A DNA stretch of 64,000 nt, taken from NCBI RefSeq assembly GCF_000143415.4, contig NW_003314390.1, forward strand, positions 86,973-150,972, given 5' to 3'. This DNA comes from Selaginella moellendorffii. Its lineage: Eukaryota; Plantae; Lycopodiophyta. The notes beneath the pieces were generated by a model that ran no database searches, was not told the DNA's origin, and saw only the letters and a program-made list of their open reading frames with translations. Both the position numbers and the translations under genes were made by a program. Within the stretch, counting starts at the first letter, position 1. Each line of letters starts with the position of its first letter. Shown here piece after piece: positions 371 to 7,692 of this stretch.

Positions 371-1708
371 CTAGCTGAGGAGAAGCACGCCGCCATGGAT
401 CCACGCCACGGCCGAGAAACTAATGAGACCAGCCAAGAGCGTCACGAGAATGCTCAAGCAAGCGTACGCATAGCCACACCTCTTCCATCCCACTGCGCGA
501 CGCTCCAGCCAGTAAATCTCCGCTGCGAGCGTCGACACCGTGCTCATGCACCCCAGCATTCCAAATTGGATCCCTCCAGACACTAGCAGCAGCTGGTGAT
601 TCGATACCTGTGAGAGACAGAGCTCTCGGCTAGAAACTCGAAACGATCGAGAAACTCTGGAAGAACTTACCACCCCGAGGAGCTCCAGGATGTTGAGGAC
701 GAACTCGGCCAAGGAGGCAGTGACGTTGGCACACAGAGTCCCCGTTGGAAGCCAGCAGAGCCTTCCAGCGACGCCCCGGCCATTGAGATTGGAGAGCCAC
801 CAGCGGAGCCACACTCCCAGAGGAGCGAGCGTGCAAGCGATCCATAGCTTCTTCCTCCTGTAGTCGTTCTCGCGAAACAGCAGGAAGAAAGCCATCGTCC
901 AGAGGCCAATGCTGAGGAACACAAAGAGGAGGAGCTGCGTCGTGTGCCTCCAGTAGAGCTTCTTCGGCTTCTTCGACTTTGAGGCTTCGGTGGTGGCATC
1001 ATCCAGCTTGCATGCCAGGAGCAAGTTTGCGGAATCAATGCCGATGAGCAGAGACATCATAGCCAGCTCCATTCCTAGAAATTCTTTGGAGTTAGCTGAA
1101 GAACTCAACCGACTTACCCAGGAGAAAGCCCAACAATCCTCTCACCCAGCAGCCGGCGGTGATGATCCTCACCATGCTTTGCGACCACGACGCAAACGTG
1201 GTGATGCTTCCCATCAAACCGGTAGAAAGTCCCACCGCTAAGTGCTCGGAGAAGTGTGCTATCTCTTTCTTGAGCACAACTCCCACCCAGCCCATGAAGA
1301 AACATCCGAGCTAAAGAAGGAAAACAAAAGCCACCATAAGAACTCGAAAGAGAAAAGGGAAGATCTTTGGGTACCATATTGGCTGGAAGATCGATGAACA
1401 AAGCACTGCTTGTATCCGTAACTTGAGCTATGGTCGGGCCAAAGAGCTGCTCCAGTCCATACCTCAAGAGCACCTAGAAGCGCCACTCGCATTCTCAGTT
1501 CTTCTGGAGCAACGAAAGAAATCGCCAAAACTTACTCCAAGAATCCCAAATGTTGCCAGGTGGGCGAGCACCGACACCTGATCTAGCAGCACACACACCT
1601 CCCGATCCTGTCTAGACAAGCTTTAGCAACCTGCATTGCGATCCCGAGCGCAAGACGCACCTCTGCGAAGGCGTCCGCAGCCGCCATCTTCTCCACATCC
1701 TCCTCCAT
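371..1708 (-). CDS. FEX: Fluoride export protein (FEX, tandem CrcB/Fluc domains), multi-exon
   Basis: Spliced segments read SVLAHLATFGILG / LLRYGLEQLFGP...DLPANM / GCFFMG...GLSTGLMGSITTFASW / APLGVWLRWWL...PTGTLCANV...GMLGCMSTVSTLAAE, giving two CrcB signatures. GT-AG introns are short. The ATG at 1708 is inferred. Confidence 0.85.
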
Positions 1709-2074: not shown

Positions 2075-2377
2075 CCATATCACACCCAAATCGGTTAAGG
2101 AATTGTGGTGACACGTTGAGTTTCTAGAAGATCATCCAATTGACTTGCAACAAACAATGAAAGAGCCAAATTTCAGTATGATTTGAGGGTTTGACACTGG
2201 ACCGGCAGCTGAGGGCCACTTCAACTGTGGGGCAACAAAATAGAAGGTTACAAGAGTTACACGTACCAGAGATCACAACACGTCCAAATAAATGCTTGGG
2301 CTCTCTTCCTTGGCGACGCATCACTGAGAAAGAGAGGTAAAAACAGGGTCGCTGAGGAACAAGATCGGAACGACACG

Positions 2378-4261
2378 ATGATTCCTTCCTCCACTGCTTG
2401 GGCATGGACGTCTTTGGCAGGAGCTGCTGGAGTTTTCTGGCTTGCGGCGATTGTCTACTGGAGGTCATGGCGATTCCGAAAGCTCCAGAGGCTTCCACCT
2501 GGGAGTATGGGATGGCCGCTCATTGGCGAGCTGGTGCCATACGTGACAATTGCTCGCTCCGAGACTCCATTTCGCTTCACAAGAGAACGAGAGAGCAAGT
2601 AAGCTCATCGATTCTTAGCACCTTGGAAATTTACTCTTCTCTCTCGCAGTGAATTGATCGATTGCAATGCTACAGGTATGGACCAGTGTTCAAGACGAGC
2701 TTGGTGACGGGCAAGACTATCATGATCACTGATGTGGAGGGTGTCAAGTTTGTTCTCCACAACGAGGGTGTTCTCTTCGAGACGGGCTATCCCCAATCGC
2801 TCAAGGATGTCCTGGGCGAGCGCGCGATGCTCTTCCATCACGGTGACTTGCAAAAGAGAATGCACGCCATGCTAAAGAGGTTTGTGAGCTCCACGCCCCT
2901 CAAGAAGTATCTCACGCGAGAGATGGAACTCCTCACTAAGCAAGGCATGAGTACGTGGAGCAGAGGCCAAAGGATTCTTCTCCAGGACGAGATCCAAAGG
3001 GTTACTACCTGAACATTTTCTCTTAAGTTTGATCACAAATCCTTTCGTTTTTATTTCAGATCACCCACGACTTTTTGATGAAGCAATTGTTTGGATTGGA
3101 GCCTGGCAAGCTTTCCACAACCATATTGGAAGAGTTTAACACCCTCATGGCGGGGATCATTGGTGTTCCTATGATGATTCCAGGGACTCCATACTTCAAA
3201 GCAATGAGGGTACTCTTACATTTTTTTATATTTCAAAACTTTAAATTCTTCTTTCAAAATCAGGCAAGGGAGAAGCTGTCCCAGATTATAATGGATATGG
3301 TGGCTGCTCGAAGGGCCAGACCAGACATAGAACACAAAGACATCCTCAACGCATTGATCGAAGAAGTGAAAGAAGAAGATGGTGATGTGGAGAAGATTAT
3401 AATCGACAATGTTTTGGTCAACATTGCAAATGCAGAGGGTATTCCGGCAATCGTCATTGCTTTGGCTGTGAAAAACTTATCAGAAACTCCCAAAGCACTC
3501 GAGCACATCAGAGTAAGAAAATTCCATTTCCAAGCTTCTCTAGATCCTTAACTTTCCAGAATCTCTAATGCAGGAAGAGAACCTTGCAATCAAGAGGGGA
3601 AAAGATTCGAATGAAGGCCTTTCTTGGAATGAATACATGTCTTTAGAGTTCACCCAAGCTGTAAGTTTTTTTCTCTTTAAATTTTGTATTGATAAAGAAT
3701 TCAGGTTTTTAACGAGACACTTCGTCTTGCCAATGGAGCTCAAGGAGTAATGCGGAAAGCCCTCAAAGACGTGGAATATAGAGGTAATTCACAATTTAAG
3801 AATCCACTAGTCTAACACTCCATGGAAATTCATTCAAGGTTACATAATCCCCAAGGGCTGGACAGTGCTTCCTTATTTTCTCAACATCCACTTCGATGAA
3901 AATATGTTTCCAAATCCAACTAAGTTCCACCCATGGCGCTGGCTAGAGGTAAATATTATGATTTCTCACAAACTACGTTTTATTCTCCTACTTATCAGAA
4001 AAACATTCCATCAACTTACGTGCTTCCTTTTGGTGGTGGGTCGAGATTGTGTCCGGGCCAAGAGCTTGCTAAAGTCCAGACTGCAGTGTTTCTTCACCAT
4101 TTGGTCACCCAGTTCAAGTATAATTTATCTTTTCTGGTTAAACATTTCATTAACAACATAATGTATTGAACAGATGGGATGCAGAGCCAGAAACAGTGAT
4201 CAACTTTCCGAAGATCAGCACCAGAAACCACACCCCAGTTGTGCTGTACGATCTACACTAA
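2378..4261 (+). CDS. Cytochrome P450, CYP85 clan (CYP90-like), 9 exons
   Basis: N-terminal anchor, [32 protein letters not shown], heme motif [11 protein letters not shown] and C-terminus [12 protein letters not shown]...LYDLH*. Eight short GT-AG introns restore the frame. Confidence 0.92.
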
Positions 4262-4309
4262 TTAGCCAGACCAAATAAACGTATGAGAAACATTCCAAGA
4301 GATCACAGT

Positions 4310-4720
4310 AAGAAGATGTAACTCCTGGATATGGACATGTAGCTCGCTTTACCCTATTGGCGGCCATGATTTTGAGGTGCGCATTGACGAAAAGAGGGTC
4401 CTCTACGTGAGGAAACTACCTGGTTTGGACAAATTCCTCCGTAGCATGACCCAGTTCACTAACTTGTTACGCGAATTAAGTCATTGACAAGATTGATCTG
4501 TGGGGCAATTTAATTGCACACAGGTTGTTTATGGACTCATGTACCAAGGTTTTGGACCACCAACAACAAGGTGGTGATCAAAGTGAAGAAGATGATTTTT
4601 ATGTCAAAGACTTGAATGTTCTTGTGTCATGGTTGATGATTGTGAGGACAATTTCCGGAATAATCAGAGGAATGGGACTGCTGTAAGGTTCTTTGAGGAC
4701 GACTTAAAGGACACTTAGAA
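4310..4720 (+). pseudogene. FCP1/SCP (NIF-domain) phosphatase relic, intronless
   Basis: Broken frames give KKM*LLDMD (DLDET-like), LYVRKLPGLDKFL, VIDKIDLWGNLIAHRLFMDSCT, FYVKDL and VMVDD...NG..V.FFEDD. Confidence 0.6.
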
Positions 4721-5686: not shown

Positions 5687-7692
5687 TCAAAGATATGTTT
5701 CAAGCGTCAGTGGCTTCCGAATCTGGGCTGCTGTCTTGAACCTTACGCCGATTCCTGCAGCAAAGCTCGGACAGGGATCACCTCGACAACACTCAAAAGA
5801 AAACGAGAGGCAAGGCATCAAACCGTACTTGTGGAATGACGACGACAAGGCGGCCCAGCTCCGACTGTTCATGAAAGGGAGAGCTACCAAGTAGACGATA
5901 AAAGCCGCGTAGAGACAGATGAGAATTCCCACGAGCAGCAGGATCAATATGGATCGGATCGCACTGTGGAGCAGAAACACAGCTAATAGATAAAAGTTGA
6001 TGACGACAACGAGTAGCGCAATCAGACCCGCGGCAGCCTGCACGACCACGCATCATGCGTCAAACAGGAGAAGACGTAAGAATCCAACCTTGAGGAGGCC
6101 ACCGATTCTAAACGACCCCATGATCCGCTCGTTGTCAACGAAAGTTAGCAGCGGGATGAGAGCAAACGGAAGCTGGATGGACTGGAGAACGTTGAGCCAC
6201 TCGTTGAGCTGGTCGAGCTCGTTGTCGGAGCTGTCGAATGCTAGAGCGACGATGATTGTCGGAACGATGGCCACGCTGCGAGTTACCATGACTCGGATCC
6301 ACTTCCGGATACGCAGGTTGAGGAAGCCGGCCATGACGAACTGTCCGGTGTAGGTGCTGGTCATGGTGCTGCTCTGCCCGGCCGCGAGGAGGCCCGCGGC
6401 CCAGATATACTTGATGGGGAAGTTGGAGCCGCCGTAGGCATGCTGGAGGTACTCACCAGCGTTGGCGAGGCCGATGTGTTGAGCGCCGGGCTTGCCGTAG
6501 AAGCTCTTGGCGAAGACGGACATGATGAAGACGTTGATGAGGAAGGAGATGACGATGGCGATGGTGGACTCGATGGAGTAGTAGCGGAGAGCGTCGCGGA
6601 CGTGGACCTTGTTGCTCGTGTCGATGGCCCGGGACTGGACGAGGGCCGAGTGGAGGAAGATGTTGTGGGGCATGATGACGCAGCCGACGATCCCGACGGC
6701 CTTGTCGATCGCGTTTGCTGGGACTCTGGGGATCACCAGTCCTGATCGCCATCCAGGGAAAGAGATGAGAAGCGAAGCTTGCCACCTAGAAGAACTAGAA
6801 CTCTAGCGAAGAACTACTTGAAGAACTCTAAAGAAGAACTCGAGAGAACTCTAGCGAAGAACTCCAGAGAAGCACACGTAGAACTCGAGGAACTCTAGCG
6901 AATTCCAAGAAGAAGAAGTAGTACGTACCGGAGATGATGGCATTGGAGCTGGGCTGGGCTTCTCCAAAAACTCCCGCGAAGGACAGTCCCATGATCAAGA
7001 TGAGGACAGCAAACAGGGCCTCGAGCTTGCGCACGCCAAAATTCTCGAGGAAGAGGAACAAGAAGCTGCGCAGGAAAATCTGTGAAGCCTCGAGAGATCG
7101 ATCCAGCAAAGAGGACAAGGAAGAAAGAAGGAAAATCTCTTCTTTTTTCTTCTTTCTTACCCGTAGATCCCAGTCATGAGCACTCCAGCCCAGAGGTGGA
7201 TGTATCCCCGGGACAAGATCTTAAACGCGATAGCGCTGCCAATCACTTCCTGGATATCGGCCCCGATGATCGCGACCTCGGTCATGATCCATAGTACGAT
7301 CTTGGTGCTGGACGGGTACTCTTCCCGGCAGAGCTCGGCGAGATGGGATCCAGTGGCGACGCCGAGGCGTGCGGCCAGGAGCTGGATCAAGAGGCCCATG
7401 GCGTGGCGAGGAGGAGGAGCCAGAGGAGGTAGTAGCCCGCCTGGGCGCCCACCTGGAGATCGCTCTCGATGTTTCCCGGGTCCAGGTACGCAATGCTCAT
7501 CAGGAATCCCGGCCCCATGAAGATCCACAGCTTGCGCCACGAGAAATTGGGCTGCTCGCCATCGCCCTGGCCGCCAGGATCGACATCACCGACGCGCACG
7601 AGCTCCGATTTCTCGTACGCGCGCTCCTCTGCTGCTGGAGCGTCGTTGCGCGCCCGGAATTGCGATAGCAAAGGAGCGCTCTCGTCTCCCAT
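5687..7692 (-). pseudogene. NRAMP: NRAMP metal transporter with a 1-nt frameshift in exon 1 (pseudogene allele or sequencing error)
   Basis: Motifs [44 protein letters not shown] and GQSSTMTSTYTGQFVM are present. GCC ACG CC ATG at 7407-7397 lacks one base relative to A-T-A-M. The last exon boundary is uncertain. Confidence 0.85.
6785..6905. repeat. Degenerate GAAGAACTCTAG tandem motif in NRAMP intron 2
   Basis: About 8 imperfect (GAA)GAACT(C)TAG/CGAG units. A similar motif occurs in a FEX intron at 630-670. Confidence 0.55.

Follow-up and report, generated by a model that had tools for sequence, protein, structure and literature searches.

The plus-strand gene at positions 2378-4261 of a 64,000-nucleotide stretch of Selaginella moellendorffii DNA (contig NW_003314390.1; the whole stretch is called the window, and bare positions refer to it) is the intact haplotype copy of CYP90E2, a cytochrome P450 gene whose product lacks the acid-alcohol pair that serves oxygen activation in the I helix. 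CYP90 enzymes are the textbook brassinosteroid (BR) hydroxylases, and a constrained lycophyte subfamily without this pair stands out among them. The gene, the family and the idea that CYP90E enzymes couple flavonoids are already published; what is new here is that the whole CYP90E subfamily is without the pair. The CYP90E I helix is mentioned in none of PMC6658078, PMC12370966 and PMC3862569, and its motif loss appears to be undescribed in the literature that could be searched. The anatomy, identity, expression and evolutionary constraint of CYP90E2, taken jointly, are shown by the data below, and of these we are all but certain.

The I-helix motif (A/G)Gx(D/E)(T/S) is typical of monooxygenase P450s, although not obligatory in the superfamily. 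CYP90E2 fails to match it, reading N-A-E-G-I-P. Whether the sequences were aligned by MAFFT (8 and 241 sequences), by phmmer against the CYP90B1 structures or against CYP154C1, or by a profile hidden Markov model (HMM), A-G-x-E-T-T/S was paired without gaps with N288-A289-E290-G291-I292-P293. Anchors flank the motif on both sides, with I-x-D upstream and IALA-x-K downstream, and in the profile HMM, built from 232 non-Selaginella relatives, the motif is placed with a posterior of 8-9. No register can restore a Ser or Thr at the canonical place, because residues 281-301 hold none. A +1 register, setting A-N-A-E-G-I-P against A-x-x-E-T-I-P (CYP87D-like proteins) or G-E-D-S-V-P (CYP90D), is tempting to the eye; it requires a pair of compensating indels, was chosen by neither MAFFT, phmmer nor the profile HMM, and would make E290 the acid with Gly at the Thr place.

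For comparison we used 229 aligned non-Selaginella relatives (CYP90A/B/C/D, 724, 85, 87, 707 and others of the CYP85 clan): the column of I292 holds Thr or Ser in 228 of them (T 212, S 16, N 1), that of G291 holds Glu or Asp in 219, and not one of the 229 is free of Ser and Thr over columns 288-298. The motif state of CYP90E2 is, on these counts, not chance variation. The closest relatives, CYP90C and CYP90D, read P-G-E-(D/E)-(S/T)-(V/M)-P, and relative to them G replaces D/E and I replaces S/T in the alignment; E290 is retained. Elsewhere the invariant columns are intact, namely E348 and R351 of ExxR, P402-W405 of PWRW and the haem Cys425, which lies in a thiolate loop of the form FxxGxRxCxG. 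A first-pass annotation, made from the letters alone, had described a CYP90-like P450 that had lost the pair at 3400-3480 while keeping ExxR, PWRW and the haem Cys, and had named a Thr or Ser at the canonical position as what would overturn it; the alignments bear out the family, the loss and the intact motifs, and place no such residue there. It had taken AGYETT as the starting motif, and here only the loss holds, since the closest relatives carry the CYP90C/D form instead. In a separate case, P0101 of Linum trigynum is the sole other protein, among the 229, without Thr or Ser at the Thr column; its sequence there, A-A-S-E-N-A-S-S, has Asn at that place.

The altered helix is shared by every copy of the subfamily. 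CYP90E1, E2 and E3, in all alleles, read N-I-A-N-A-E-(G/N)-(I/V)-P-A, with Asn-Val in E1 and Gly-Ile in E2 and E3. The alignments thus show a state that is common to all CYP90E copies and essentially unique among the sampled relatives. Another lycophyte, Diphasiastrum complanatum, has a CYP90-family expansion (P0027 and P0138-P0142), mostly in tandem on one chromosome, whose best matches are CYP90A1 and whose placement in the tree is unresolved. Its I helix reads G-G-H-V-S-T, with the acid gone and the alcohol kept; this is another way, distinct from that of CYP90E, in which lycophyte CYP90s depart from the motif.

The gene has 9 exons that encode a 475-residue product with no internal stop codon; its 8 introns are all GT-AG and 44-77 nt long. 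Its parts are as follows.

2378-2598, plus strand: exon 1, with the start codon, the N-terminal membrane anchor (helix 4-37 in the model) and the hinge; transcript contigs join 2598 to 2676
2676-3000, plus strand: exon 2, supported by the gene model, transcript contigs and a Pfam p450 match
3060-3209, plus strand: exon 3, supported by the gene model and transcript contigs
3264-3512, plus strand: exon 4, residues 233-315, which holds the I helix; supported by the gene model and transcript contigs
3408-3470, plus strand: I-helix core N281-V301, inside exon 4, with no Ser or Thr
3429-3446, plus strand: N288-A289-E290-G291-I292-P293, in place of A-G-x-[ED]-[TS]-x
3574-3660, plus strand: exon 5, supported by the gene model and transcript contigs
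3705-3783, plus strand: exon 6, with the K-helix ExxR as ETLR (3714-3725) and a Pfam p450 match
3839-3948, plus strand: exon 7, with PWRW (3931-3942) and a Pfam p450 match
3999-4117, plus strand: exon 8, with the haem loop (4029-4058; Cys425 at 4050-4052) and a Pfam p450 match
4174-4261, plus strand: exon 9, with the stop codon TAA at 4259-4261; supported by the gene model and transcript contigs

Pfam and PDB-sequence searches were run exon by exon. The Pfam p450 model (PF00067) matches exons 2, 6, 7 and 8 (exon 8 at E 3e-9). Exon 4 alone gives no Pfam p450 match, and its best P450 matches among PDB sequences reach only E about 0.6; these failures show how far exon 4 has diverged and do not themselves give its placement. 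An exhaustive HMMER search of exon 4 against 1.84 billion cluster representatives returned one true match, the 475-residue P0001, at 100% over residues 233-315; nine further matches were discarded as long repetitive proteins aligning to an acidic stretch. The spliced model agrees residue for residue with P0001, which was therefore used, as the identical protein, in the later analyses and is SELMODRAFT_186571 (XP_002992110.1; UniProt D8T951, 'ROT3B-2') of S. moellendorffii.

Four CYP90 genes, CYP90E1, E2, E3 and F1, make up the family in this species (PMC3862569). In UniProt D8S8C4 is named CYP90E1 and D8SQ89 CYP90E3, and because these carry the E1 and E3 names, the gene described here, with its allele ROT3B-1, is by elimination CYP90E2 (PMC3862569). 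The protein is 92% identical to CYP90E1 (D8S8C4) and 82% to the product of the CYP90E3 locus, both beyond the 55% that defines a subfamily; with 39% identity to CYP90D1 of Cicer it falls just under the 40% family rule. After the Selaginella paralogues, the next-best matches in a collection of 5.8 billion sequences are CYP90D1/C1 proteins, at 37-39% identity. CYP90E2 is shown to encode a P450 of the lycophyte CYP90E subfamily anchored in the endoplasmic reticulum (ER).

Transcript contigs from four public runs of four studies, aligned over 2200-4500, skip exactly the 8 predicted introns; they are therefore transcript assemblies, and the gene model holds at the RNA level. A joint placed at 3207/3262 represents the intron after exon 3 as read on the G3208A allele. 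One contig of 875 nt differs from the window allele in two letters, and over 3400-3460 the transcript contigs show no base differences. An apparent intron in the 3' untranslated region after 4265 was rejected as a 264-bp haplotype indel: 4266-4529, directly after the stop codon, is missing from the other haplotype (locus L002) and from the contigs of three runs. A minor in-frame joint at 3381-3434, with GT..AG ends inside exon 4, occurs in one run at a depth of 22, against roughly 800-2500; it would drop 54 nt and with them the first half of the I helix (residues 272-289), and is probably splicing noise. Upstream, at 2030-2080, lie several AAACCCTA(A) telomere-like (telo-box type) units, about 300 bp ahead of the start codon. 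Plant promoter telo-boxes typically sit at such an upstream position.

The exon structure was carried over from the window gene to its paralogous and allelic loci L001-L005, which with the window give two copies of each gene.

E1a, locus L001: intact, same nine exons
E1b, locus L005: 4-bp deletion in exon 4, frameshift
E2a, locus L002: lacks 2317-2523 of the window, including the start codon
E2b, the window: intact
E3a, locus L003: intact, same nine exons
E3b, locus L004: intact, same nine exons

In E2a (L002:3351-3830, scaffold GL377598, the allele of 2086-2530) the missing 207 bp are flanked by GGCGA microhomology; the deletion removes the ATG and the first ~49 codons, and ~265 extra bases sit upstream. 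Contigs that carry E2a variant letters in exons 3-9 nevertheless include exon 1, so that either a polymorphism or a fault of the assembly may lie behind the deletion. This deletion accounts for the 386-residue truncated model of CYP90E2 (P0132), from which the published statement that CYP90E2 has no ER signal (PMC3862569) stems; in the full gene the N-terminal anchor is present and normal. In E1b (L005:3874-4118, scaffold GL377600) the loss of AGAT shifts the frame about 10 codons ahead of the I helix, and the NCBI model XP_024538364.1 (463 residues) sidesteps this by omitting 12 residues; E1b is a null allele unless the deletion is a sequencing error. At L004:4597-4950 the old JGI model SELMODRAFT_182839 (P0012) ends out of frame and has no haem cysteine. 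In the DNA of the locus the FGGGARLCPG loop is intact and the C-terminus normal, so that the mis-splicing is a fault of the model.

Substitution rates between these copies were estimated by the Nei-Gojobori method.

E2-E3: dN 0.106, dS 1.50, dN/dS 0.07
E1-E3: dN about 0.10, dS about 1.49, dN/dS 0.068
E3a-E3b: dN 0.0009, dS 0.026, dN/dS 0.035
E1-E2: dN 0.035, dS 0.144, dN/dS 0.24
E2 alleles (exons 2-9): dN 0.0085, dS 0.031, dN/dS 0.27

Given a dN/dS of about 0.07 at a dS of about 1.5, the altered I helix is older than the deep duplication that separates E1/E2 from E3 and has been kept by strong purifying selection, and simple decay is therefore ruled out.

The P450 fold of CYP90E2 was confirmed by AlphaFold2 and Foldseek. 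The AlphaFold2 model, built on an 87-sequence alignment, has a predicted local distance difference test score (pLDDT) of 92.9 and a predicted template modelling score (pTM) of 0.88, and its top Foldseek match is CYP90B1 (6a18: TM 0.85/0.91, rmsd 2.1 Å; CYP90B1 overall, TM 0.85-0.92). By DSSP the I helix consists of two segments, 274-289 and 292-306, interrupted for two residues at E290-G291, immediately before I292-P293; in a control model of Cicer CYP90D1 made with the same alignment it is unbroken over 272-303. The I helix of CYP90E2 is thus predicted to be broken at E290-G291. In a tree of 48 proteins (IQ-TREE, LG+C20; CYP90J was not among them) CYP90E1, E2 and E3 form a clade with support 100/100, which is sister to angiosperm CYP90C/D (100/97) to the exclusion of CYP90A, 90B/724, 85 and 87, a placement that carries a long-branch caveat. 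The same sister relationship has been reported (PMC6658078), and GbCYP90J6 and other CYP90J proteins are described as phylogenetically close to lycophyte CYP90E (PMC12370966). Diphasiastrum P0027, tried as a bait for gymnosperm CYP90J, returned CYP90A-type proteins. The CYP90E stem measures 1.4 substitutions per site, versus 0.5 for C/D.

What such an enzyme does is approached through its relatives. Expressed in Arabidopsis, CYP90E1 (Sm233379) and both CYP90E3 alleles (Sm182839, Sm157387) do not rescue rot3, dwf4 or cpd, and CYP90F1 rescues cpd (PMC6658078). Gymnosperm CYP90J enzymes convert apigenin to amentoflavone by a diradical mechanism, and SmCYP90E3v1 forms a trace of amentoflavone from apigenin, plus a naringenin dimer (PMC12370966). 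The loss of the pair could explain both why CYP90E genes do not complement C-23 hydroxylase mutants of Arabidopsis and why CYP90E3v1 has coupling activity. Flavonoid phenol coupling is the leading candidate because this paralogue performs it weakly and because Selaginella accumulates biflavonoids. We accordingly favour, as a proposal that falls a little short of an even chance, oxidative coupling of flavones or flavanones to biflavonoids as the reaction of CYP90E2.

Before E1, E2 and E3 split, the acid and the Ser/Thr were replaced by Gly/Asn and Ile/Val, followed by Pro, and purifying selection has retained the result since. We infer that CYP90E2 is independent of the canonical proton relay. 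The enzyme would still accept electrons and O2; substrate hydroxyls, together with ordered water in the opened I-helix groove, could protonate the iron-bound dioxygen as in P450eryF, and the chemistry would be hydrogen abstraction from phenols with no oxygen rebound. As a whole, a constrained CYP90E2 that uses substrate-assisted O2 activation for flavonoid coupling is our best explanation, and we hold it to be about as probable as its negation. A stronger version, in which the N-A-E-G-I-P helix is an adaptive re-tooling of a C-23 hydroxylase ancestor into a phenol-coupling oxidase and CYP90E1-E3 are the native biflavonoid synthases of Selaginella, seems to us rather unlikely. If it were true, CYP90E1-E3 would perhaps differ in regiochemistry or substrates, the subfamily would be the plant equivalent of the bacterial couplers that lack the Thr, and the origin of its biflavonoids would be mechanistically separate from the Thr-retaining gymnosperm CYP90J.

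Several observations weigh against flavonoid coupling by a re-tooled helix. The coupling by SmCYP90E3v1 is only at trace level and was seen in E. coli (PMC12370966). The efficient coupler, GbCYP90J6, retains E292/T293 in its AGxxT motif, E292 being proposed to hydrogen-bond intermediates (PMC12370966). Because that best coupler keeps the pair, coupling does not require motif loss, nor is it shown to benefit from it, and a causal link from the loss to coupling is, on our analysis, not supported. The first-pass annotation had proposed a repurposing to flavone coupling on account of the lost motif; the published paralogue data (no complementation, trace coupling) speak for the repurposing, whereas its supposed cause finds no backing. 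In addition, no orthologue above 41% identity was found in another species in the collection of 5.8 billion sequences. Finally, no flavonoid or sterol pathway gene adjoins CYP90E2, so that nothing points to a biosynthetic cluster: its neighbours are a CrcB-type fluoride channel gene (371-1473, minus strand) and an Nramp metal transporter gene (5687-6785, minus strand), in the same order on the other haplotype (L002).

A steroid substrate is a candidate in its own right. CYP90E2 could be an oxidase of a lycophyte BR-like pathway acting, for example, beside a 22-hydroxyl, with the substrate OH and water supplying protons; for hydroxylation next to an OH of the substrate, P450eryF offers a precedent. 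Consistent with this, the C-23 hydroxylases CYP90C/D form the sister group of CYP90E (our tree; PMC6658078), E290 is kept from a C/D-type P-G-E-D-S motif, and Selaginella, with only its four CYP90 genes, responds to brassinolide and propiconazole (PMC3862569). Overexpression of CYP90E1 in Arabidopsis also altered BR marker genes and fertility (PMC6658078), which hints at a steroid substrate and counts against coupling as well. The same CYP90E1 and E3 genes leave rot3, dwf4 and cpd unrescued, most BR intermediates are undetectable in Selaginella (PMC6658078), acid and alcohol are both gone, and the very long stem argues for a change of function; on balance we think a steroid oxidase improbable, if worth keeping in mind.

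Less probable still, in our estimate, is some other specialised reaction that dispenses with canonical oxygen activation, such as C-O-C coupling of the hinokiflavone type, action on other phenolics, or a CYP74-like peroxide rearrangement with N288 over the haem. It would suit the lost pair, the Asn at the 'A' place of AGxxT, the predicted break in the I helix and the weak activity of SmCYP90E3v1 on two flavonoids, from which the native substrate may differ. CYP74 enzymes have an enlarged haem-binding loop and are independent of the reductase. The Cys loop of CYP90E2 aligns to CYP90B1 without an insertion, and with a loop of normal length the first-pass analogy to CYP74 finds no support. It is hardly credible, by comparison, that the CYP90E genes are crippled or decaying duplicates whose motif loss is degeneration. 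Two of the six haplotype copies in the reference assembly are damaged (the 4-bp deletion of E1b and the 207-bp deletion of E2a) and the E1-E2 dN/dS is higher, at 0.24; but the ratio is 0.07 at the depth of E1/E2 versus E3 and 0.035 between the E3 alleles, the remaining P450 motifs are intact, transcripts are correctly spliced (those of E2a type retaining exon 1), the structure model is confident, and the paralogue CYP90E3v1 has measurable activity.

The nearest points of comparison for CYP90E2 are its own paralogues. SmCYP90E3v1 and SmCYP90E1 share the 9-exon structure and the N-A-E-[GN]-[IV]-P helix (82% and 92% identity, respectively); SmCYP90E3v1 differs in having assay data, and E1 and E3 in having complementation data. 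CYP90C1 (ROT3) and CYP90D1 resemble CYP90E in the Glu at the x place and in a Pro shortly past the motif, but they keep the acid and the Ser/Thr (P-G-E-D/E-S/T), a C-23 hydroxylase feature that is present in all sampled CYP90C/D and not found in CYP90E2; CYP90E has Gly-Ile and a predicted break where the CYP90D1 control helix is continuous. The closest solved structure is CYP90B1 (DWF4; PDB 6A15-6A18; E 1e-91), which differs in its canonical A-G-H-E-T-S helix and is a sterol C-22 hydroxylase.

Outside the CYP90 family, the phenol couplers CYP158A2 and OxyB are said to lack the I-helix Thr; for CYP158A2, an Ala in its place was not confirmed in the papers searched. P450eryF (CYP107A1) has, like CYP90E2, no conserved Thr, and the 5-OH of its substrate and waters serve instead (PMC9049603); it differs, as do the two phenol couplers, in being bacterial, soluble and unrelated in sequence, and it keeps the acidic residue, whereas CYP90E has lost the acid at that place too. 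The I-helix motif is also altered in the non-canonical plant P450s CYP719A and CYP80G2 (PMC5913652). The Ginkgo amentoflavone synthase GbCYP90J6 is, like CYP90E, a CYP90 enzyme, and its reaction type is the one proposed here (PMC12370966). Its E292/T293 correspond to G291/I292 of CYP90E2 by motif position, the J6 residues being taken from the text of PMC12370966 rather than from an alignment, and this contrast of Gly-Ile with Glu-Thr bears on a possible shift of P450 chemistry from hydroxylation to radical coupling when the pair is lost.

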